The notes below the pieces were generated by a model. The model did no database searches and was not told the origin of the DNA. It worked only from the letters and a program-made list of their open reading frames with translations. DNA of 64,000 nucleotides, taken from positions 186,001 through 250,000 of the IMG/VR virus record IMGVR_UViG_3300042545_001134, one strand, 5' to 3'. Position numbers and translations under genes: made by a program. This document shows positions 7,751-54,392 of the stretch, one piece after another. Position 1 is the stretch's first letter, and each line of letters starts with the position of its first letter.

Positions 7751-10700
7751 TTATCTATCACAATCCTCGGGTTTATTACATGGTACTAAACTGTTTACAT
7801 AACTAGAAGTTGGAGCTGTCAGTTGAACGTCACCTTGGAAGTAAACCAATGCAGGTGAGTAACGAGTATCTGCACTCCAAATACATATGTTATATATTCC
7901 TGCAACACCAAACATCGTTAACCTTGGTTCATTACCATAACCGCACTCAAAATATTTAAAGAATACTTTTCCATTTGCACTTGGGTAGTATGCCCCATTT
8001 ATGGTAACAGGGTTGTTGTTACCTGTCGCATTATCTATATCCTCTTGACTAATTGTTATTTCATGACACGTACAAATTAATGGTGCCGGGTTATATGGTG
8101 GACAAGGGGTGCAGTCATAACACTGTACACCTGTTGGTACCGCAATGTTATTAGTGTCAGTAAGTAATTCGTCAATACATAATGTGCCCGTTTCTCCCGG
8201 GTTGAAATACTGTTCTTGCGTTCCACCTGTACAGTTAATATAATAAATCCAACCACCCGTATATGATGGTCCTATGTTGTAACATTCAACCGCCAAGGTT
8301 GCTGTAGGGGTTGCTGTTGGTGTTACAGTAGGAGTTGGTGTTCCTGTAGGGGTTGCAGTACTAGTTGGTGTTGCAGTACTGGTTGGTGTTACTGTCGGTG
8401 TTGGTGTTCCTGTAGGGGTTGCCGTACTAGTTGGTGTTACTGTCGGTGTAGGTGTTATGCATGGTCCACAATCTGAACATGTGTTATAATATTGATATAT
8501 TGGTGCACATCCTTCATTTGTTGACCCTACGCTTGTTATTGTGTAACAATATCCATAGTAATTAATAATCTGACCAACGATTGGTAAAGTATATTCTGTT
8601 GAGCATCCCACCCCAATATCAAGTTTATTAACTGTAGGATTTTCAGGACAACAAGAGTCTAAATTAACATTCACATATAACCCCGGATTCTCAATCAAAC
8701 AATCTTCACATGTGGTAAAATCAAATAAAGTGGTTCCAGGATAATATCCATCTGAACCATTACCACCAATGTCGGTTAAATGGTAACAACATCCAAAAAT
8801 ACTTGTTGTTAAATTAGTATCTATTGCATATGCACCAGCATCTACCGTTACATACTTAAATTGACTTACATCACAACATGATGTAAGAATAAGATTAATA
8901 GGTGGTGTTGATGTTGGCGTTTCCGTAGGTGTCTCTGTTGGAGTTGCTGTTGGCGTCTCTGTTGGTGTTGCAGTTCCTGTTGGAGTTGCTGTTCCTGTTG
9001 GAGTTGCTGTTCCTGTTGGAGTTGCTGTTGGCGTCTCTGTTGGTGTTGCAGTTCCTGTTGGAGTTGCTGTTCCTGTTGGAGTTGCTGTTCCTGTTGGAGT
9101 TGCTGTTCCTGTTGGAGTTGCGGTTGGTGTTTCCGTAGGAGTTGCAGTTGGCGTCGCTGTCGGCGTTTCCGTAGGTGTCTCTGTTGGAGTTGCTGTTGGC
9201 GTCTCTGTTGGTGTTGCAGTTCCTGTTGGAGTTGCTGTTCCTGTTGGAGTTGCGGTTGGTGTTTCCGTAGGAGTTGCAGTTGGCGTCGCTGTCGGCGTTT
9301 CCGTAGGTGTTGGGGTTATAGTTGGTGTCGCAGTTGGTGTTTCCGTAGGAGTTGCTGTCGGAGTTGCAGTTCCCGTAGGAGTTGCGGTTGGCGTTTCCGT
9401 AGGAGTTGCGGTAGGTGTTGCAGTTCCTGTAGGGGTTATAGTTGGTGTTTCCGTAGGAGTTGCAGTAGGTGTACTAGTTCCTGTCGGTGTCGATGTCGGC
9501 GTTTCTGTATTAGTTGGTGTAATGGTTCCTGTTGGGGTTGCTGTTCCTGTCGGAGTTGCAGTAGGTGTGCTAGTTGGTGTTTCCGTAGGAGTTGCAGTTC
9601 CCGTAGGGGTTGCTGTTGGCGTCTCAGTAGGAGTTGCTGTTCCCGTAGGAGTTGCTGTTCCTGTAGGAGTTGCTGTTGGCGTTTCCGTTGGTGTCTCTGT
9701 TGGCGTTTCCGTAGGAGTTGCAGTAGGTGTACTAGTTCCTGTCGGTGTCGCGGTTGGCGTTTCCGTAGGTGTACTAGTTCCTGTCGGAGTTGCCGTAGGA
9801 GTTTCAGTCGGAGTTGCTGTTGGTGTACTAGTTCCCGTAGGAGTTGCCGTAGGTGTACTAGTTGGTGTTTCTGTATTAGTTGGTGTAATGGTTCCTGTTG
9901 GGGTTGCTGTTGGTGTTTCCGTAGGAGTACTAGTTCCGGTAGGAGTTGCCGTTCCTGTAGGAGTTGATGTTGGCGTTTCCGTATTAGTTGGGGTCGCTGT
10001 TGGCGTTTCCGTTGGAGTTGGTGTACTAGTTCCTGTTGGAGTTGCCGTTGGTGTCTCTGTTGGAGTATTGGTTCCTGTTGGTGTTACTGTCGGCGTCTCA
10101 GTAGGTGTATTAGTTGCGGTTCCCGTAGGTGTTTCCGTAGGAGTATTAGTTCCTGTAGGAGTTGCTGTCGGCGTCTCTGTGCTAGTTCCAGTGGGTGTTA
10201 TTGTAGGTGTTGCGGTACTAGTTGGTGTTGGTGTTGTTTGAACATAAATTACCTCAACACATGAACATACAGGTTGGACAGAATTAACGGTAAAACTACT
10301 AACACATTCTCCCTGTTGTAAAACAGGATTCAAATTGAACGAATGTGTATGGTCGTTGTATGCGATTGTTTCTGTTCCATTATATACCGTACCTAAATCC
10401 CCATATGCGGTTCCTGATACCACATAATCACAAATGGCATTTGCGTTACCCGTTAAATTAGGATTATCAAATAATTTCAAACTAAAATTAGTACATCCAA
10501 GTAATTTTACCTCCAAGTATTGAGTTGTAACCAAAGTACATGTTGTAGTTGGTGTTACAGTTGGGGTATCAGTTGGTGACTGTGTAATCGTAGGAGTCAC
10601 TGTTGGTGTTTCCGTAGGAGTTGCCGTTCCTGTAGGTGTAATAGTTGGTGTATCAGTAATAGTCGGCGTACTGGTTCCTGTCGGAGTTGCCGTTGGCGTT

Positions 10701-13700
10701 TCCGTAGGAGTTTCAGTTGGTGTTTCAGTCGGAGTTGCCGTTGGCGTACTAGTCGGCGTTGCCGTTGGTGTCTCAGTAGGGGTTTCAGTCGGAGTTGCCG
10801 TTTGTGTTGGCGTTTCCGTTGGTGTAATAGTCGGCGTTCCTGTTGGTGTTTCCGTAGGAGTTGCTGTTGATGTCTCTGTCGGAGTATTAGTTCCTGTTGG
10901 TGTTTCCGTAGGAGTACTAGTTGGCGTTTCCGTAGGAGTTGCTGTTGGAGTACTAGTTGGAGTTGCTGTTCCTGTTGGGGTAATTGTTGGCGTTTCCGTA
11001 TTAGTCGGTGTACTAGTTGGCGTCTCTGTAGGAGTACTGGTTCCTGTTGGAGTACTAGTTGGCGTTTCTGTGGGTGTCGCAGTGCCTGTAGGAGTTGATG
11101 TTCCCGTTGGTGTTGTAGTTGGTGTATCCGTAGGAGTTGCCGTTGGCGTTTCCGTAGGAGTTGCTGTTGGAGTTGCGGTTGGCGTTTCCGTAGGAGTCTC
11201 TGTTGGTGTACTAGTTCCCGTAGGTGTTATTGTTGGTGTATCAGTAATAGTTGGTGTACTGGTTCCTGTCGGCGTTTCAGTCGGAGTTGTGGTTGGTGTC
11301 TCAGTAGGAGTTGCAGTAGGTGTTGCTGTTCCTGTAGGAGTTACTGTCGGCGTAATTGTTGGCGTTTCCGTTGCAGTAGGAGTACTAGTTGGTGTCTCTG
11401 TCGGAGTTGCTGTTGGTGTTACAGTGCTAGTTGGGGTTACCGTACTAGTTGGTGTATTTGTTACCGTTCCTGTGGGAGTTTCCGTTGGTGTTACAGTAGG
11501 TGTACTAGTTGATGTTGGCGTTGGTGTTGTCTCGTTAAATATAACATCAACATCGATATCAAAATTACAATCTAATATGTTCACATCGATATCAAAATCA
11601 CAATCTATACACTCACCAAAAACCGAAATCTCTAATTCTTCATTTGTTGGTTCAGTTGGACAATGTTCAGGGTCAATATAATATTGACCTAATTTAAAGT
11701 CAAGACCCGGATGAACACTATATGTGTGTTTCATTAGTAATTGTTCATTTGAGTTACCATTGAATACTACTAAGAAACTATCATCACCTAATGGTGTGCC
11801 GTCCTTCTCAACATTTAAATTAAAATATAGGTTTGATTCACAGTAATTTAAATCGACAGCAATCACTTCGATTGGGTACCCATATTGATTAATTAAATAA
11901 TCTCCATGATTATATAACTCTTTTGGGTGGTCACAGCATGGTTCAATGAAATCTATTGGTTTACTTTGTAATTCTTCAGGAAATCTATCATCAAAGTGAT
12001 AGTTACCATTTGTTACATTTCCAAAATTCTCAATAAACTTATTTGTATAAACTCTAAGTTGGGTTGTTGGTAAAACTTCAAATACTTCATAAATTCCATT
12101 ATTGGTTAAACCCGTAATGACACTCTTCTTAACAGAAGCAAGACAATCTTTATCGGTAACTTTTAATTTAACATATTCATATGTGAACGAATAACCATTT
12201 TCAGGTGCGTCTTGGAATTGTTGATTTGATAATTGGTTACAATCTTTGTATTCAGCAGATAAAATGTAATCATCAACAAGAAGGTCACAAACACTTTTTT
12301 TAATTATATCTCCGTTTGAAATAAAAGTTTCAACATCAATACTTGTGGTACCGCTGTTAATTGTTATTCCCGTTGTGACAACTAAAACATCCGTATCACA
12401 TTTTAAACCATAATTGAAATTACTTCTATATTCAACTTTAGGGTGAATTGTATGTCCCGTATAATTGTCACAGAATGTGGCACCTGATATGGATGATATA
12501 CTATTTCCTGAAGTTCCTTGGAAACCTATTAGTTCGAACAATTCAACGTGACTTTTACCACTTGGTAATGGACATGGGTCATGTTCAACTTTGGCCTGTA
12601 AACCTTCTATTCTAAATTTAACTTCTTTATTTGCACCGTCAATAATGTCAAAATCGATAATTTCATTTTGAGTTATTCCAGTTAATTTAAAGACACAGTC
12701 TTCACCCGGTACTCTCTCAATGTATATGTCCGCATTTTGGTTATAACCAGACACACAGTTTGCGTAAATGTAAAATGGCCATTCTCCACTAGGATTTTGA
12801 ACGCCTGATTTGTGTCCAATAACCTCAATGTATAAATCGGAAACTAATAAACAATCCACCGGTTCATTACAATAGTATTGACCATCTCCTCTTACCTCGA
12901 CACTCATTTCAACAACATTCTTTGTTGTCTCATAATCCGCCTCAAATCGATAATCAAAATAATCTTTTACCGAACAATCTCCAATACCGTACTTAATTGA
13001 AGAGAATCTAATCATCTCTTCACCATTTACATCAGTAAACAGTTCATAACTAACCATTGGTACTTCTTCAGTTGTATATGTTTGACCTGTTGCACCTAAG
13101 AATGGGTCATAGTCTTCATATCCCGCAGTATATCTTGTTATAGTGATAACACTAATAAGTTCAGATAATGCACTTAACCATAATTGTTTAATCTTAACAA
13201 TATCAGGTTCTAAATAATCTTTATAATCACAAATAAGAGCCAAATTAACGGCATCATTACTTGTTAAATCCGTACAGTCATCCATTGGGAATGGATTGTA
13301 CAATTGTGCACTATTTGTTGTGTTAGTTGTCCCACTAACAACCACTGTCATTGCTGATGTTAAATCACTAAATGACGGACCACCGTAAACAATACCATCA
13401 ATTTCAATTGTGGGGTAATATGTTACACCAGTTAAATTGATTAACCCCCTGAAGTTACTTTCTTCACCAAGTAAGGTTTCTAAATCTTCCTCAATTGCGG
13501 TTTCGAAATCGGGATATAAATTTTCAACAAACTCCATTGGTTGGCAATCGAATATGTAAGGGTATTTTGGTCTTCCAAATAGATTATTTTCTATTAGATT
13601 ACCACCCGTCCACAATGTTGTTGCCGGAACTAATTGTTCAATTAGTTGGACCCAATATGGTGTGATTTTATCAACAAATTCATTTACATCGATGAAACCA

Positions 13701-15862
13701 TAAGGACTAAATCCAACTTGGGAAATATAATCTCTATAAATGTCTTCGAGAACAATATAATTTTTCTTATATCTAATCGTATTAGAATTTTTTATTGTAC
13801 CATGTATAAATTTATCTACGAATTCGGCAAATGTTACACCTGTTTGTGGTACCAAATTATTATTAGTACCAAAAGATAGATTTAAGTTTCTACCTCTTCT
13901 ATATATGTCATAATCAATACCTTTTGATGGGGAGATATGAACATTAATGTTTTTTCTGTTTAAAATTAATAATGAATCATCTTCAACAGAATGTGTTTTC
14001 TTGTTATCGATTTCTGTTTTAAGACCATAACCCGTATCTAACCCCGGTAACGTTCTAAAAACATCAAAATAATTTTCACCATAAGTGTATGGTTTGTTTT
14101 TTGTTTTGATTGTTTTTGTTAATCCAGTTAGAATTGAGTTTTCAGTATCCAATATCGTTGGTGTACGGTGGTCTAACGTAATGTCGTACCAACCTGAACC
14201 CTTTTCAAAGAATATTTCGTCCGTTTGGTTGAATGCCCTTCTTGGTAATAAGGTATCGGGGTCAACAGGGTAACCATCTCTATCGAAATTTGTTGTTCCC
14301 GTTACTGTTGATGTTTCGTATGTGTAACCTGTAAGGTTAAATGTCGCAGTTGTGTATGTTTTTTCACCTTGGATGACATCGTAGATGTCTTGTTCCAAAT
14401 CAAAACTTCCCGGAATAGATTCAACTCGGTAAATGTACTCGTCAAGTTTTATTAATGGTTCAGGTGCACCTAAGAATTTTAAGAAAAACTCAATACCCGC
14501 TCTTGTACCTTTTGATTTAAAGATAAACGCCAAGTTTACTAAAAGTCTTCTATAGAATTCATATTCGGCATCAATAAGGTTGAATCCTTTGGAAACACCC
14601 CCATAACTTGAGTCTTGTCTTGAATATAAAACATCCTCTAATGATTTTTCATCAAATAAATTAATTGACGATAAACCTAAATTTTGTGATAAGTTTTTTA
14701 ATAATACGTCGGGTAAATTGTTGATACCATCATAACTTACATTTCTCATGTAAGCAATGTTGTCAATGTATTTTTTTACCTTATCGAAACTTTGTCCATA
14801 TAATTGGAAAACACTTTCCGCCTTTTGGTCTTCAGTGTCAAATTCAAATAATTGTGGAGACGCTAAGAATCTAACCATTAAGTTAGATTTGTAGTCATCT
14901 ATTTGGTCTGAGATATCACTCAGATTTTCAACATATGATTCGTAGTCAAGTCCTGCAATTCTGATGTTCCAATTATCTGACGATAACGGCCAAGTATATT
15001 CAACGTTTTGTAATGTGGTTCTTGAACCATCACTGTTATCCATTGGTATTTGGAAACTTGCAGTGTAAATAGGATTTGTTTCTCTATTTAATAACGCCTC
15101 TTCCAAATCATCCAAACCATTGAAGAACTCTTCAACGATACCGTCATTTGGTCTAAGTAAAAAATTAGATGAATATGTTGTAGACCCACTAAGTGGATTA
15201 CCTAAGACAACAAACTTAATTTCGTTTGCCGAATTCGGTTGTGTGTATTCAATGACAGGGTATGTGTTACCACTAAAAACCGCAACGTACTTACTATATG
15301 ATGAGTATAAGTTTCTTATCTCGTTTTCAGTTGTAGGTTTAATTGCACTGTTTGGTTCAATAAGTGAAACATCAAATGGGTTAAAGAGTTTTGCTCTTTC
15401 AACATAGAATGTTGTTCTATTAAGATTAATATCATAAGACGCATTGAATGCGGTATATGAATTACTTCCAATGGGTCCACCACCCTCAACACTTAAACCA
15501 CCGGGAAACTTATTGATAATACGAGTAACCGATACTAAAATTCTGTCTTTTAATGAACCGAATAAAGATTTGTCGGCGTTTTTCTTATTACTTTTAAAAC
15601 GAATTGAGGATTTCTTTTCCTGTGCTGTTTTATTTTGGGTAACAACAGCAGATGTTTCTTCTTTTAAATTATCTAAAGTTAAAAAATCTGAAAATGGGTT
15701 GTTTTTGAAATTTTTTGCATCCTTTGAAGGTATCGTTTTATCAATATCAAAACTGGTATTAGTCAGCGCGGAACTTCCGTTGGTGATTTGTCTACCAACT
15801 AAGTTATCGCTAAATGTTTGCCCACCGTTCGCTGCCTGACTCGGTACCTTTGTTGTTGCCAT
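7751..15862 (-). CDS. giant baseplate wedge protein (gp7 / P2 gpI-like N-terminal part) fused to about 830 aa of Pro-Thr repeats and Cys-rich distal domains
   Basis: 2703 aa. [30 protein letters not shown] matches the KGT..A/GIE motif of gpI/gp7-type wedge proteins; lies downstream of gp25- and gp6-like genes. Confidence 0.6.
8298..8456 (-). repeat. coding Pro-Thr repeat tract 3 (about 53 aa)
   Basis: [17 protein letters not shown] repeats in the 2703-aa ORF. Confidence 0.9.
8900..10237 (-). repeat. coding Pro-Thr repeat tract 2 (about 446 aa; 12- and 18-nt units encoding [14 protein letters not shown])
   Basis: Seen directly; includes near-exact tandem 18-mers gttcctgttggagttgct at about 9051-9122. 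Confidence 0.95.
10541..11530 (-). repeat. coding Pro-Thr repeat tract 1 (about 330 aa)
   Basis: Seen directly in the 2703-aa ORF. Confidence 0.95.
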
Positions 15863-32179: not shown

Positions 32180-33194
32180 TGTTTTTAATTTTTATTATTT
32201 TTTTATTTTTTTCTTTTCTTGTTAATCGGAGGAATGGATTTAAAAAATTAATCCACGCATCGTCTGATTTGGGTAAGAGAAGGAAGATACCATCTTCCAT
32301 CATCATCTTCATCGTGTTTTTATAAGAACGACCTTCGGGGTCCATTTTATCATGGATTAGTGATTCAACCGACTCCTTTGCCTCATCTGTTAGAAATGGG
32401 TTATCTAAACTTACTATTCGACTGTTAACATCAAAAAATTCTTCACCCAGTACCCCATATTTGGTCACTCCCGTGAGCAAATTGGTGATTAGACGATTAT
32501 CCCTATCCTGTTCGAATAAGTCGTTAAAACGGTTCCTAATGAATTCTAATGTAAGTTCTTCAGTTTTTAGTTCAGGGACAACTGATAAGAGTCTTCTAAC
32601 GCCGAGGTTTTTAATTCCTGCAATGTTATCTGACGGGTCACCACACAACATCTTTACTAATTTGATGTTCTCGATTCTAATCTCTTCGTGGTCATAAACA
32701 AACATATCTTTTGGTTGATATAGTTTACTATGTGAAGGATTAAACAGTTTTGTGTTTTCTGAAACTAATTGTGTTAAATCTCCATCTGATGAGAATATGA
32801 TAATATTCTCCTTTGGTGAGTTTTGTGAATAGTATGCAACAGAATCGTCAGTTTCACAGTATTCGTATTCACCTTGACGGACAAAAAGTTCTTCCAAATA
32901 TTGTTTTACTCGGTTTCTTTGTTGTCCGTATGCGGTTACTTCTTCTTCTGTTCTAATCCGACTTTTTCTATTCTCTTTGTATTGGTGATAGTATCTCTTG
33001 CGAGATGCAGAACCCTCTTCACCATCCCAAAAAACGACTATTTTGTCTAAATGGTGGATTTCAACCATTCTACGAAGGGTATTAATAAAGTGATATAAAC
33101 CACCAATATGATTCCCTTTGTAGAAATGATTTTTAAGTCCAAAAAACCCAATGGTCAATAAATTATCTCCATCAACCAATAAAACATTTGACAT
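32172..33194 (-). CDS. 5'-3' exonuclease / flap endonuclease (T4 RNase H, Pol I N-terminal-like)
   Basis: LLVDGDNL, VFWDG, YKENR, ETDD, SSDGDLTQL and H3TH motif GDPSDNIAGIKNLG. Confidence 0.93.
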   Translation of the reverse strand: MSNVLLVDGDNLLTIGFFGLKNHFYKGNHIGGLYHFINTLRRMVEIHHLDKIVVFWDGEEGSASRKRYYHQYKENRKSRIRTEEEVTAYGQQRNRVKQYLEELFVRQGEYEYCETDDSVAYYSQNSPKENIIIFSSDGDLTQLVSENTKLFNPSHSKLYQPKDMFVYDHEEIRIENIKLVKMLCGDPSDNIAGIKNLGVRRLLSVVPELKTEELTLEFIRNRFNDLFEQDRDNRLITNLLTGVTKYGVLGEEFFDVNSRIVSLDNPFLTDEAKESVESLIHDKMDPEGRSYKNTMKMMMEDGIFLLLPKSDDAWINFLNPFLRLTRKEKNKKIIKIKNNE

Positions 33195-50759: not shown

Positions 50760-51248
50760 TTAGTAAACTTGGATACATCTATCCATACGTAAAGACGCAG
50801 TGATAGTTGCGATATCGTCTCTTGAGTAATCAAGTTCATTGAAGTTCAAGTCAGTCAAGAATGTACCTTGAAGAATCCATTTTTCAACCACAACACCCGT
50901 TGGGTCTAACATCTCCAATTCGATGTCTTTCTTATAACCCGCAGCGTAACCCATACGACCCGTAACAGACTCAGCGTGAAGACGGAACCATTCCATCAAT
51001 GCCTGTGACGCAGAAGGACCAATAGGGTCTTTAAACGTTACTCTTAATTCGTTCCACTCAAAACGTCCCGCAACATAAGTTGAGGTATTGATGAACGGAA
51101 TCGCAACTGAATTGATTTTTGCACTTGGTCTAGCCGCTGATGACACATACCATTCGTTGATACCCAATGAAGAAGGGAATCTAAGTATGAATCGGTTAAC
51201 TCTTTTCGGTTCGTAAGGAACCGGCATTTTCATTAATAAATCTGCCAT
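50760..51248 (-). CDS. tail tube protein (T4 gp19-like)
   Basis: EPKRVNRF, YVAGRFEWNEL.VTF.DP, LMEW and GYKKDIELEMLDPTG.VVEKW; follows the sheath gene. Confidence 0.9.
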   Translation of the reverse strand: MADLLMKMPVPYEPKRVNRFILRFPSSLGINEWYVSSAARPSAKINSVAIPFINTSTYVAGRFEWNELRVTFKDPIGPSASQALMEWFRLHAESVTGRMGYAAGYKKDIELEMLDPTGVVVEKWILQGTFLTDLNFNELDYSRDDIATITASLRMDRCIQVY

Positions 51249-51372
51249 GTCTATATTTTTGTTTTAGTTTTTTTTTGGTTATTCTTCTTACTTATAAATA
51301 TGCCTATCTTGAAAAAATAAAAAATTTCAACGTAGGCCTTTTTTATTTGGTTTTTTTTTCGTATTTTTTCCC

Positions 51373-51465
51373 TATACTAGTATAAATACTGGAACTGGAT
51401 TTAAAGATTTAATAAATAAATCTAGAAATATAATACTAGTTCTAGTATACTAGATATAATACTGG
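51373..51465. repeat. cluster of CTAG-containing palindromes and direct repeats (candidate origin or protein-binding array)
   Basis: TATACTAGTATA (51373-84), AGATTTA-N5-TAAATCT (51405-23), ATACTAG-TT-CTAGTAT (51433-48), TCTAGTATACTAGA (51441-54), ATATAATACT twice (51428, 51454). Confidence 0.6.
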
Positions 51466-51498
51466 GTAAAATATACAAATATTTTTTTTATACTTTTT

Positions 51499-51514
51499 GG
51501 TTCCTCGTGGAACA
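51499..51514. promoter_or_regulatory. parS-like site
   Basis: Minus strand TGTTCCACGAGGAACC is 14/16 identical to the palindromic parS form TGTTCCACGTGGAACA; intergenic. Confidence 0.5.
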
Positions 51515-51516
51515 TA

Positions 51517-51543
51517 TAAATGGGAGAGGTTACCCCCTCCCAT
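51517..51543 (-). terminator. hairpin after the sheath gene (weak terminator or mRNA stabiliser)
   Basis: AUGGGAGGGG-GUAA-CCUCUCCCAU with only a short U tail. Confidence 0.45.
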
Positions 51544-51554
51544 CTTTATTTTCA

Positions 51555-54392
51555 TTAGATATTATCAAATGATGCTCCTGTTGGGGTAATTATGAACTCA
51601 ACATCGATAAATTCAAGTGAACGAGTTGGTTTTACATAGATTTTACCTCTAAGTGTGTTTGCATCAATGTCCTCAGGGTCATTAGATACAGTTACACGGA
51701 ACTCATATAAACCTCTTTCTCTCTTAATTGCTTCAAGAATTGGGTTTACTAATCTCAAGAATTCATTACGAACTTGTTCGTCATTTTGTTCGAACAACAA
51801 TCTTACAGCAACTGCTGAAATAAGTTTTCTTGCTCTTAACAATAATCTTCTTACGTTAATTCTATCCAATGCAGATTCTCTTACTTGAAGGGTTTTGTTA
51901 CCCCAAATAATGGTACCTGTATCAGAGAAAGTAGCGATTGGGTTGATTCTTGCCTTATATAAATCATCTCTTTCGTCAAGAGTTAATTTTTTAACCGCTT
52001 TGATTGCCTTAACCAAACCTCTTGAATAACCCGCTACTGCGAACCAAGGGAATGATACGTTATCTGTTAACGCAATGTTTCTTACAACCTCACCTGTAGG
52101 TGGAATGTATAATTGAGTTGCGTTGTCTTGGTCTCTAACTTGAATCCAAGGCCAGTAGGTTGCTGAATAGTTAGTATCCAATGCCACACCGTCCAATGCG
52201 TCAATTACTTCGTCCGCAGTTGATACGTTTGGAGATGCAATAACATAAAGTGAATCCGCTCTATCGTTTTCCATAATATCGATTGCCTGTGTAGTTAATG
52301 AACTATGGTCGTAGAAGTTAATACCCGGAGTTGCGAAGATGTTGATATCTACCGCTTCAGGGTTTGCGAATGTGTTAATACCTTGTAGGTATGCATAATA
52401 ATCAGAGTTTCCAACAGTTGTACTGAATACACCACCGTTAGTTGTGTGACCACTTACATATGTTGATTTACCAAAGATATATCCGTCTCCGTAAGTTTTA
52501 GTTTGACGATAAATGTCAAAACCATCGAAACCACCACCAACTGCAAATGTGAATTTACGGTAAGTTGTTGCTGTTAATGGATTATCAACACCTGTTTGTC
52601 CTTCTAAATCGTAAGGAGTTGTTGTAAATGTTGTACCTGTAATAGTAGATGCGTTTACTGATAAGTGGAAACCACTTGTTGAACCCGCAGCCGCCGCTCC
52701 TTTATATTTGAATAAGTCTTTGTCAAGTCCAACTTGTGAAGATAGACCTAAAGTTACTTTTCTAATTTTATCACCGGCAGATGTAACTGGAGAACCATCA
52801 ACATTGTAACTGATAACATCACCTGCGGTGTAGTATTCCGTTTTATATAATACTGAACCCAAAACAGAACCTGAGAAGTTTGTGTTTGCTACAAATCCTT
52901 TAAATCCTGCTGGAAACGCATCAGTTGGGTGGTTTTCAGCCATATTCAACATGATGTATTTTGAACGTAATTCGTATTCACCGTCAGAAGTACCAACTTT
53001 CTTAGCCACATAACCTGGTAGGTCTGGATTCATTGAACATCTTGTAAATTTCTCAAGTGCAACTAAATTATCGTCAGTATCGTTAAAGTCACGAACAATT
53101 AAATCAAATTCACCTGTTTCGATATCGATATTGATGATAGACATTTTGATTTGTGCGTTCGCTGCGTCACCATCTGAAATTGTAATAGTCTCAAATAGGT
53201 CAGAAACCTCACCACCACGTACTTCAGATACTACCATTGGAGAAATTGGGGTATCCCACTCTCTAACGAAGTTTGTACCTTCAGAAACATAAAGTTCAGT
53301 TAAACTAATACCTCTTACTAAACCTTGTTCGTATGCGGTCTTTAAATAATTTGGATATGTTTCGTAAACATACACCGGAATGTCCGATTTAGGTTTGTCA
53401 TATACATCAGTACCTAACACTTTAGTTACATACTTAGATGATGATAAATCCATTGAACAAGTGAATGATTTTACACCACTTGTAGAACCCGTTACATTAA
53501 CTGTAAACTCGGCGAAAGGATTTGTTGACAAATCAGAACCTGAAATGTTGAAACTTGTGTTACCTGTAACTTCAAGTAACAATGTTTGTCCTGAATAAGA
53601 ACCTCTTGAACGGAACGCCGCAACAACTTCACCGTCATTGGTTAATGTTGCATCGTACTCATATCTTGTTACTGAGAATAGGTTAGTTGAACCATTCCAT
53701 ACGAATAAATAAGAATAAACCTCATTTGTACCGTTATTGAATGTGTTGTACCAATTTTTATTCCAAGATGAATTTACATTTAGGTCACCTGTAAGTGGTG
53801 AAATCATTTCTTTAGTTGGGTCTTGAGCTGCAACATCTGTTGCATCCGCCGCACCAATAACGAACCATGTACCTGTACCACCTGTGAAACCACTAAATTC
53901 TGTGTAGATGTAATCTGTAATAGATGTACCATCATATGCAGTTTTACCCGAAAGTTCAGCGTATACTGTACTTCCTGTGTAAGTTGCTAATGGTGTTGGG
54001 TCCATTGTGATACCTGTTGTGGTACCTGTTGTCATACTCCCCAAAACAAAACCACCAAGGGTTTGAATTGCGAAAGTTTTCACTGGTTTATATCCTGTTA
54101 ACCCTAGGATTCTTGTTACGAATAATTGATTCGATTCTTCAAGGTATGCTTTAGCAACATAAGGTAACTCATATTTTGGGTTACCCGCCCCGTCTTTTGC
54201 TGGTGATGAACCTCCAAAGTACAATTTAAACTCATCATAATCTTTAACTAAGATTGGTTCGAAGGCTGGACCCTTTAAGGTTTCACCTACCAAACCTAAT
54301 GTAGTAACACCTACACTTTGTGCGACGAATGTTAAATCTTTTTCTGATGTATAAACACCTGGAGATACAAATACTCTATTTGAATTTGCCAT
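51555..54392 (-). CDS. contractile tail sheath protein (T4 gp18-like)
   Basis: VSPGVYTSEKD, GETLKGPAFEP, YSATYWPW, PWFAVAGYSRG, INPIATF, IIWGNKTLQ..SALDRINVRRL and KPTRSLEFI. Confidence 0.96.
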   Translation of the reverse strand: MANSNRVFVSPGVYTSEKDLTFVAQSVGVTTLGLVGETLKGPAFEPILVKDYDEFKLYFGGSSPAKDGAGNPKYELPYVAKAYLEESNQLFVTRILGLTGYKPVKTFAIQTLGGFVLGSMTTGTTTGITMDPTPLATYTGSTVYAELSGKTAYDGTSITDYIYTEFSGFTGGTGTWFVIGAADATDVAAQDPTKEMISPLTGDLNVNSSWNKNWYNTFNNGTNEVYSYLFVWNGSTNLFSVTRYEYDATLTNDGEVVAAFRSRGSYSGQTLLLEVTGNTSFNISGSDLSTNPFAEFTVNVTGSTSGVKSFTCSMDLSSSKYVTKVLGTDVYDKPKSDIPVYVYETYPNYLKTAYEQGLVRGISLTELYVSEGTNFVREWDTPISPMVVSEVRGGEVSDLFETITISDGDAANAQIKMSIINIDIETGEFDLIVRDFNDTDDNLVALEKFTRCSMNPDLPGYVAKKVGTSDGEYELRSKYIMLNMAENHPTDAFPAGFKGFVANTNFSGSVLGSVLYKTEYYTAGDVISYNVDGSPVTSAGDKIRKVTLGLSSQVGLDKDLFKYKGAAAAGSTSGFHLSVNASTITGTTFTTTPYDLEGQTGVDNPLTATTYRKFTFAVGGGFDGFDIYRQTKTYGDGYIFGKSTYVSGHTTNGGVFSTTVGNSDYYAYLQGINTFANPEAVDINIFATPGINFYDHSSLTTQAIDIMENDRADSLYVIASPNVSTADEVIDALDGVALDTNYSATYWPWIQVRDQDNATQLYIPPTGEVVRNIALTDNVSFPWFAVAGYSRGLVKAIKAVKKLTLDERDDLYKARINPIATFSDTGTIIWGNKTLQVRESALDRINVRRLLLRARKLISAVAVRLLFEQNDEQVRNEFLRLVNPILEAIKRERGLYEFRVTVSNDPEDIDANTLRGKIYVKPTRSLEFIDVEFIITPTGASFDNI

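Follow-up and report, generated by a model that had tools for sequence, protein, structure and literature searches.

A parS-type site at the tail sheath/tube junction of a jumbo phage, a candidate mimic of the chromosomal parS of its host

The site at the sheath/tube junction

The window analyzed here, a stretch of 64,000 nucleotides, corresponds to bases 186001-250000 of a single IMG/VR virus record (IMGVR_UViG_3300042545_001134) of 310,691 bp and 34.7% GC, and it carries a 16-bp site of the parS type in the 306-bp gap between the genes of the tail sheath and the tail tube (Table 1). The matches of these two genes identify the genome as that of a phage, a myovirus of about 310 kb, in agreement with an earlier note made on this DNA from its letters alone; the phage is a giant freshwater jumbo myovirus. 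On the gene strand, the gap runs from the sheath stop codon through a terminator, seven bases, the site, an A/T-rich stretch, a palindrome cluster and an inverted repeat to the tube start codon. The stem-loop that terminates the sheath gene lies 7 nt upstream of the site on this strand, and its folding energy is -19.8 kcal/mol (z -4.6).

Table 1. Features in and around the gap between the sheath and tube genes (positions in the window)
Feature	Position	Strand	Description
Tail sheath gene, 945 aa	51555-54392	-	phrog_23, E 1.7e-59; upstream neighbor of the site
Intrinsic-terminator-like stem-loop of the sheath gene	51522-51541	-	GGGAGGGG-GTAA-CCTCTCCC, then TTTATAT; from the terminator scan
parS-type 16-bp site	51499-51514	no strand	+ strand GGTTCCTCGTGGAACA; gene (-) strand TGTTCCACGAGGAACC
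Palindrome cluster	51373-51465	no strand	CYAGTA repeats in both orientations
Distal promoter motif TATTTATA	51381-51388	-	140 nt upstream of the tube ATG, within the palindrome cluster
Inverted repeat TTGAAA...TTTCAA	51309-51330	no strand	directly upstream of the proximal promoter; counterpart in relatives TTGACA...TCAAG
Proximal promoter motif TATTTATA	51293-51300	-	52 nt upstream of the tube ATG
Tail tube gene, 162 aa	50760-51248	-	phrog_4542, E 1.5e-23; downstream neighbor of the site

The site has the 16-bp inverted repeat of chromosomal-type parS (TGTTNCACGTGNAACA) and agrees with the palindrome TGTTCCACGTGGAACA in 14 of 16 positions, being the mismatches located at positions 10 and 16 of the gene strand; both fall in the right half, and TGTTCCAC, the left half, has none. 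Its GC content is 56%, against about 20% in the remainder of the intergenic region once the terminator stem-loop is also set aside, which confirms from the sequence what the earlier note had described as a 14/16 parS-like site standing out as GC-rich in AT-rich intergenic DNA. Moreover, in the whole genome, window included, this is the sole match to the parS pattern with three mismatches or fewer. Under a model of independent, identically distributed bases, 0.0098 matches with up to two mismatches would be expected per window and 0.048 per genome, and 28 of 100 shuffled windows hold at least one match with up to three. At this chance expectation, and with a motif picked after being seen, the single occurrence, taken alone, is of borderline significance, and therefore the case rests on the comparison with relatives.

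Conservation in phages and likeness to host parS

Relatives of the tube protein number at least 597 in IMG/VR, and two scans of them yielded 84 distinct sheath/tube junctions. The site, with zero to three mismatches, is at the same place in 41 of the 84, and the distribution of best matches is bimodal: 7 junctions have no mismatch to the parS pattern, that is, a perfect TGTTCCACGTGGAACA, 7 have one, 16 have two and 11 have three, then 3 have four, none has five and 40 have six to eight. In the relatives, the site lies just past the sheath terminator and precedes the start codon of the tube gene by a distance that is mostly about 220-300 nt, with about 251 nt as a common value. When 30 distinct junctions that carry the site are aligned on an anchor, the information content rises abruptly over positions 0-16, and the flanks stay flat. 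Little or no variation is seen at positions 2-4, 6-8, 11 and 13-15; position 9 holds G or A, position 16 holds A or C, and position 10 is unconstrained. Also, three near-complete relatives (G001, G002, which is 100% complete with terminal repeats, and G003) have one perfect site each, at the sheath/tube junction, and two further loci (L001 and L056) hold the identical 16-mer of the window. Extra half-sites GTTYCAC occur beside the site in 6 of 40 junctions, with 0.34 expected. On this conservation among relatives, the site is judged to be more than a chance match.

On a tree of the flanking genes, the distribution of the site is patchy, with well-supported branches that force at least nine changes of state and with perfect sites in at least four separate clades. 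This suggests that the site is old or repeatedly selected but dispensable, the latter because it was lost or gained at least nine times.

Beyond this family, exact TGTTCCACGTGGAACA is present in at least 120 IMG/VR contigs, compared with 3 for a composition-matched reversed palindrome. This excess was discarded as proof of a general phenomenon, since only 28 of the 120 listed sites (IMG/VR loci L081-L200) are clearly outside any 80-aa open frame, so part of them may be coding; the excess is retained as a lead. In unrelated phages, exact TGTTCCACGTGGAACA is found directly after a terminator downstream of a major head protein gene (L120, L132) or of a virion structural gene (L114), and a Pfam ParB_N match occurs in 1 of 15 records of unrelated phages with TGTTCCACGTGGAACA, or in 1 of the 5 complete ones. 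Nine viral contigs (L093, L110, L148, L152, L153, L154, L160, L166 and L188) share a perfect parS in one conserved context, just upstream of a gene with a Shine-Dalgarno-like AGGAG; they have about 34-39% GC and lengths up to about 105 kb, two of them carry terminal repeats, and they seem to form another phage family in which an orphan parS is conserved.

The host is probably a member of the Bacteroidota, order Flavobacteriales, as judged from sequence signals. A Shine-Dalgarno core precedes 1.7% of the 362 predicted phage genes, and TAnnTTTG, which we take to be the -7 promoter element of Bacteroidota, occurs 61 times in sense orientation in the upstream regions of the phage, compared with 25 times in antisense and 13.5 in shuffles. 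Also, a relative with 89% identity in the tube protein is a 248-kb contig (G005:C1) binned in a metagenome-assembled genome (MAG; G005) titled Flavobacteriaceae. In this MAG, two perfect TGTTCCACGTGGAACA sites flank mnmG/gidA, with ParA and ParB encoded elsewhere, and perfect TGTTYCACGTGRAACA sites are found, one to three per genome, in 53 of 61 genomes of its family, typically as a pair about 1.9 kb apart, with none for the reversed control. The flank of mnmG is the expected position of chromosomal parS. Of 34 mnmG loci from Flavobacteriales (L204, L384-L416), 31 have a parS-like site downstream of mnmG and 23 have one upstream of it.

The variants found in the phages also have counterparts on host chromosomes. 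Among 201 genomes of Flavobacteriales, 14 contain the form TGTTCCACNNGGAACC, compared with 1 for the control, and in the three carriers inspected (G123, G146 and G234) it is directly at the 3' end of mnmG. For G123, a Flavobacteriales genome of 1.5 Mb, the mnmG-adjacent site TGTTCCACGAGGAACC is the exact 16-mer of the window, and no perfect or one-mismatch site is present anywhere in this genome; small genomes such as this one hold imperfect sites only. The variants of G146 and G234 recur in phages as well (L041/L046/L072 and L066). Across the 34 mnmG loci, the 54 host sites vary at positions 1, 16 and 5/12 and occasionally on one side of the center, whereas positions 2-4, 6, 11, 13 and 14 never vary. 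Thus, in hosts and phages alike, positions 2-4, 6, 11 and 13-15 are invariant or nearly so, and the changes concentrate at 1, 16, 5/12 and one side of the center. By these comparisons, the consensus of the phage family is that of the Flavobacteriales chromosomal parS flanking mnmG, and the apparently degenerate variants of the phages are natural host parS variants. The host-type character that the earlier note gave to the site is therefore sustained, both by the family consensus and by the identity of the window variant with the G123 site. An acquired fragment of host DNA was considered and rejected, because the flanks of the host and phage sites share nothing.

Readings of the site

Based on these comparisons, we lean towards a site by which the phage copies or mimics the host parS and which would be bound by host ParB. 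We read it as a DNA element and not primarily an RNA element, as its pattern of variation indicates. In this scheme, a ParB-family dimer, most likely the host chromosomal ParB, would recognize during infection both TGTTCCAC, the half that is intact, and the second half, which matches in part, and ParB would then nucleate on the phage DNA. The phage genomes would in this way be linked to the ParB/ParA/SMC machinery of the host, leading to their positioning or compaction. Moreover, since phage DNA is multicopy while the host has one to three sites, it would also deprive the host origin of ParB. It seems likely that the gap between the sheath terminator and the tube promoters sees little transcription. 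We infer the binding of ParB, and all the effects downstream of it, from the sequence.

Several points weigh against this reading. The host was assigned from indirect signals, namely genes devoid of Shine-Dalgarno sequences, TAnnTTTG promoters and MAG binning. The mismatch at position 10 may leave one half unrecognized, with perhaps poor loading of the clamp; this position partners an A shown as strictly conserved in the half-site logo of Pseudomonas aeruginosa (PMC5961200). The center varies more in the phages, position 10 being changed in 11 of 30 junctions compared with any central change in about 11 of 54 host sites. Also, the right arm GGAAC is intact even where the center is changed, which a hairpin constraint would fit as well, and the site is dispensable in the phage family, with its nine or more losses or gains on the tree. 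Finally, the phage encodes a ParB-fold protein of its own. The earlier note had proposed host ParB as the factor recruited; the type of the site speaks for it, but host ParB is no longer the sole candidate binder, given this divergent phage protein.

The phage protein in question has 248 aa and is encoded outside the window (genome 52010-52756, + strand; locus L288:1011-1757), and it matches PHROG 12305, "ParB-like partition protein," over its full length (E 2e-27). In its AlphaFold2 model (pLDDT 87), the N-terminal domain superimposes on Myxococcus xanthus ParB (Z 10.4, rmsd 2.4, 87 residues), and the best matches over two domains are KorB (8qa9_B; Z 8.8, rmsd 4.0, 167 residues) and Noc (7nfu_B; Z 8.5), so that a ParB/Srx N-terminal fold is clear in the model. 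More than 700 homologues are found in metagenomes, and a host-type TAnnTTTG promoter precedes the gene. The site could then be the target of this protein, which would be made early and load there in a KorB- or Noc-like manner as a sliding regulator or organizer of the adjacent late genes, with host ParB uninvolved or competing. All genomes that carry the site and are of sufficient length to be informative also carry the gene (G000, G001, G002, G081 and the 333-kb contig of L067/L294), and in the 248-kb contig G005:C1, which lacks the site, the gene was not detected; nonetheless, this co-occurrence amounts to about four lineages versus one, since the other site-less contigs are fragments short of the position of the gene and G005:C1 is the only informative one. 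Among the phage proteins, Pfam gives no HTH_ParB match and ParB_N stays below its cut-off, the second domain of the protein taken alone matches the Spo0J-parS structure weakly (Z 3.5), and its motif is DGQHR and not GERRxRA. So divergent a protein is unlikely to keep the exact 16-bp specificity, whereas the phage variants coincide with natural host parS variants. We consider this explanation unlikely and place it second, after host ParB, because the DNA-binding region is unrecognizable to HTH_ParB, the gene is 185 kb away from the site with no similar site beside it, and the phage variants follow those of the host. Further searches of the phage returned no AAA_31 ParA and no integrase with Pfam, and no match in tblastn with Flavobacteriaceae ParA and ParB.

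The remaining explanations do without ParB or without a present function. The site could be an RNA or single-stranded DNA hairpin, GUUCC-ACGA-GGAAC, that would follow the sheath terminator as a second stem-loop, stabilizing or processing the 3' end, with the likeness to parS being incidental. Its predicted folding (-5.5 kcal/mol, z -2.9) directly after the terminator agrees with this, nearly every variant retains the five pairs of the stem, with changes at loop positions 9-10, and metatranscriptome contigs cover the junction including the site, although these contigs show neither strand, ends nor level. The persistence of the GGAAC arm beside a changed center is the one feature that a hairpin explains more simply. 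Nonetheless, the conservation of the stem is equaled at positions 7-8 of the loop and at the outer positions 0-1, and the pair 5/12 is CG in 22 junctions, TG in 3, CA in 3 and TA in 2, that is, six single-sided breaks (three per strand) for one double change, so this pair behaves as the free N position of parS rather than as a base pair. No U-tract follows the hairpin, as the gene strand continues with CAAAAAG after the 5-bp stem, and some related junctions retain the terminator without the site. Moreover, seven distinct junctions are 16/16 parS, an equally foldable reversed palindrome is at least 40-fold rarer in viral contigs, GTTYCAC half-sites are enriched, and the same variants are found at the chromosomal parS position of the hosts. 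The terminator scan reports the neighboring stem-loop (51522-51541) and not the site, so the site does not qualify as an intrinsic terminator, and neither covariation that keeps the pairing nor a match to a curated family marks it as a structured RNA. In Rfam there is only a sub-threshold match to Termite-leu (51481-51548, - strand; 29.3 bits versus a gathering cut-off of 51, with E between 9e-5 and 2.5e-4 according to the stretch submitted), which was rejected as a structural coincidence of two adjacent hairpins, the terminator and the site. A hairpin is thus an improbable account, and the possibility raised in the earlier note, that the site occurs once, is not conserved and serves as an RNA hairpin only, did not come true: the site is single per genome yet conserved, and its variation ignores hairpin rules. 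We hold it equally improbable that the site of this genome is a decaying remnant, without present function, of an ancestral perfect parS. Two mismatches, one of them in the core, and the dispensability seen on the tree would be in line with decay; against this, sites with two or three mismatches are changed almost only at positions 1, 9, 10 and 16, with nine others invariant or nearly so, which is not the pattern of neutral decay, and the 16-mer of the window is the best parS-like site of a genome of the host order (G123) and is kept identical in L001 and L056. That the site forms part of the promoter or operator of the tube gene is suggested by its position upstream of this gene and by a TATAAT-like stretch 6 nt later in many relatives, and would be very improbable, as the tube gene is already served by TATTTATA at -52 and -140. 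This motif recurs in upstream regions of the phage, with 42 copies in sense orientation compared with 9 in antisense and 6 in shuffles, and its median distance to the start codon is about 24 nt. It precedes about 45 genes, also the sheath gene at -45, lacks a conserved element upstream of it, and probably represents a promoter, of late type, that belongs to the phage itself. By contrast with it, the palindrome occurs once per genome and intergenic half-sites are not enriched. A general promoter element was likewise rejected, because the palindrome is unique, coding DNA accounts for 63 of the 69 GTTCCAC half-sites and for every TGTTTCAC half-site, and the recurrent motif is TATTTATA. A micro-ORF starting at the conserved A of ATG-TTC-CAC was also rejected, since the third codon positions 8, 11 and 14 are invariant or nearly so while 9 and 10, which are first and second codon positions, vary, and the length of the ORF is not conserved.

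Surroundings, related systems and meaning

The palindrome cluster is the only dense CYAGTA cluster of the genome, is kept in relatives and ends 34 bp from the site. Because the -140 copy of TATTTATA sits in the cluster framed by palindromes, as CCAG-TATTTATA-CTAG, the cluster looks like a regulated promoter region; CCCAG-TATTTATA-CTAG with CTAG repeats is also seen at about 32.2-32.3 kb of the genome, before the gene at 32342. The earlier note had compared the cluster and the site to a mini ori-parS module, a proposal that finds no support here, as the cluster holds TATTTATA and no DnaA-box-like sequence is present within 51100-51700. The site is inside a block of 54 structural genes, far from the cumulative GC-skew extremes at about 55 kb and about 285 kb, and a replication origin was rejected on the lack of a DnaA box and on the skew, even if the skew is weak evidence on this point because in phages it mostly follows transcription. 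The site is neither origin-proximal nor one of several, as chromosomal parS sites are; such an arrangement is a trait of chromosomes, and a mimic on a phage could do without it.

Accessory DNA appears to be inserted preferentially at the sheath/tube junction. Insertions of 0.9-2.1 kb are found there in seven relatives (L032, L037, L054, L055, L057, L094 and L269), with two opposite-strand ORFs in L055, one of them with a YkuD L,D-transpeptidase domain, and a 507-aa ORF of no known function in L032. A blastn search of the junction against GenBank phages gave no match, and relatives of the sheath protein in annotated records are distant (identity up to 37%). Elsewhere in the window, an ORF of 2703 aa (7751-15862, - strand) includes a segment (8001-12000) of 43-46% GC, with strong GC and AT skew, compared with about 35% GC for the genome, which may be a repeat-rich or acquired domain. 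At the ends of the genome, the initial 30 bases (1-30) are found again 822 bases from the terminus (309870-309899), although the two 822-bp stretches differ; either imperfect terminal redundancy or an overlap in the assembly may account for this.

A comparison with the chromosomal parS of Flavobacteriales (consensus TGTTNCACGTGNAACA, a pair flanking mnmG/gidA) reveals the same 16-bp palindrome consensus and the same variable positions, 1, 5, 12, 16 and one side of the center. Nonetheless, unlike the parS of chromosomal ParABS systems, the phage site is single and is not beside parAB, mnmG or the origin, and the phage is devoid of canonical ParA and ParB. Partition cassettes of phage-plasmids (parABS of P1, sopABC of N15 and a candidate in cyanophage Mic1, PMC7156551) also place a centromere-like site on a phage genome. 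However, these have their own ParA and ParB beside a phage-specific site, whereas here the site has the host sequence, neither ParA, canonical ParB nor integrase is detected, and the only ParB-fold gene is distant from it. KorB-OB and Noc-NBS resemble the present case in that both proteins are the best two-domain structural matches of the 248-aa protein and in that the phage site adjoins promoters, but the OB and NBS sequences differ from parS, and the phage protein lacks the HTH_ParB signal.

By analogy, the nearest precedent would be SGI1, whose "stolen" parS copies hijack the ParB of its IncC helper plasmid, as shown by genetics (PMC10954446). In that case, an orphan parS on a mobile element likewise depends on ParB from another replicon, and multicopy titration is proposed as part of the effect. 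The difference is that its victim is a plasmid partition system and its effect is known by genetics, while the phage site models the parS of the host chromosome, is known from sequence alone and belongs to a jumbo phage in which no integrase was detected. On the other hand, P. aeruginosa ParB, which has the same parS, binds in vivo to sites with two mismatches and one intact arm and also to half-sites, without spreading (PMC5961200). Such sites are like the phage one in that an intact GTTCCAC arm with a defective second arm is still bound, and unlike it in that they are chromosomal, numerous and unable to support spreading; moreover, the ParB concerned is not that of Flavobacteriales.

As a tentative generalization, in which we place less confidence than in the mimicry itself, Flavobacteriales jumbo phages without a detected integrase, possibly of several unrelated lineages, might carry an orphan copy of the host centromere that follows the parS variant of the host and recruits or titrates ParB and, via it, ParA and SMC. 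The literature searched contains no report of a phage with the chromosomal parS of its host and no partition genes of its own, an absence that applies to that literature and is not proof of novelty; if the mimicry holds, an orphan host parS acting as an interface with ParB would be a phage-host interface undescribed there. Bacteria segregate their chromosomes mainly by ParABS, and parS ranks among the most conserved DNA sites known. The phage DNA would then plug into the segregation and condensin-loading machinery of the host, or would disable both by titration, which would bear on the organization of a 300-kb phage genome in the cell, on carrier states and on the arrest of the host cell cycle by phages. 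Finally, because the phage variants match those of the hosts, the site could serve as a sequence clue to the hosts of uncultured phages.
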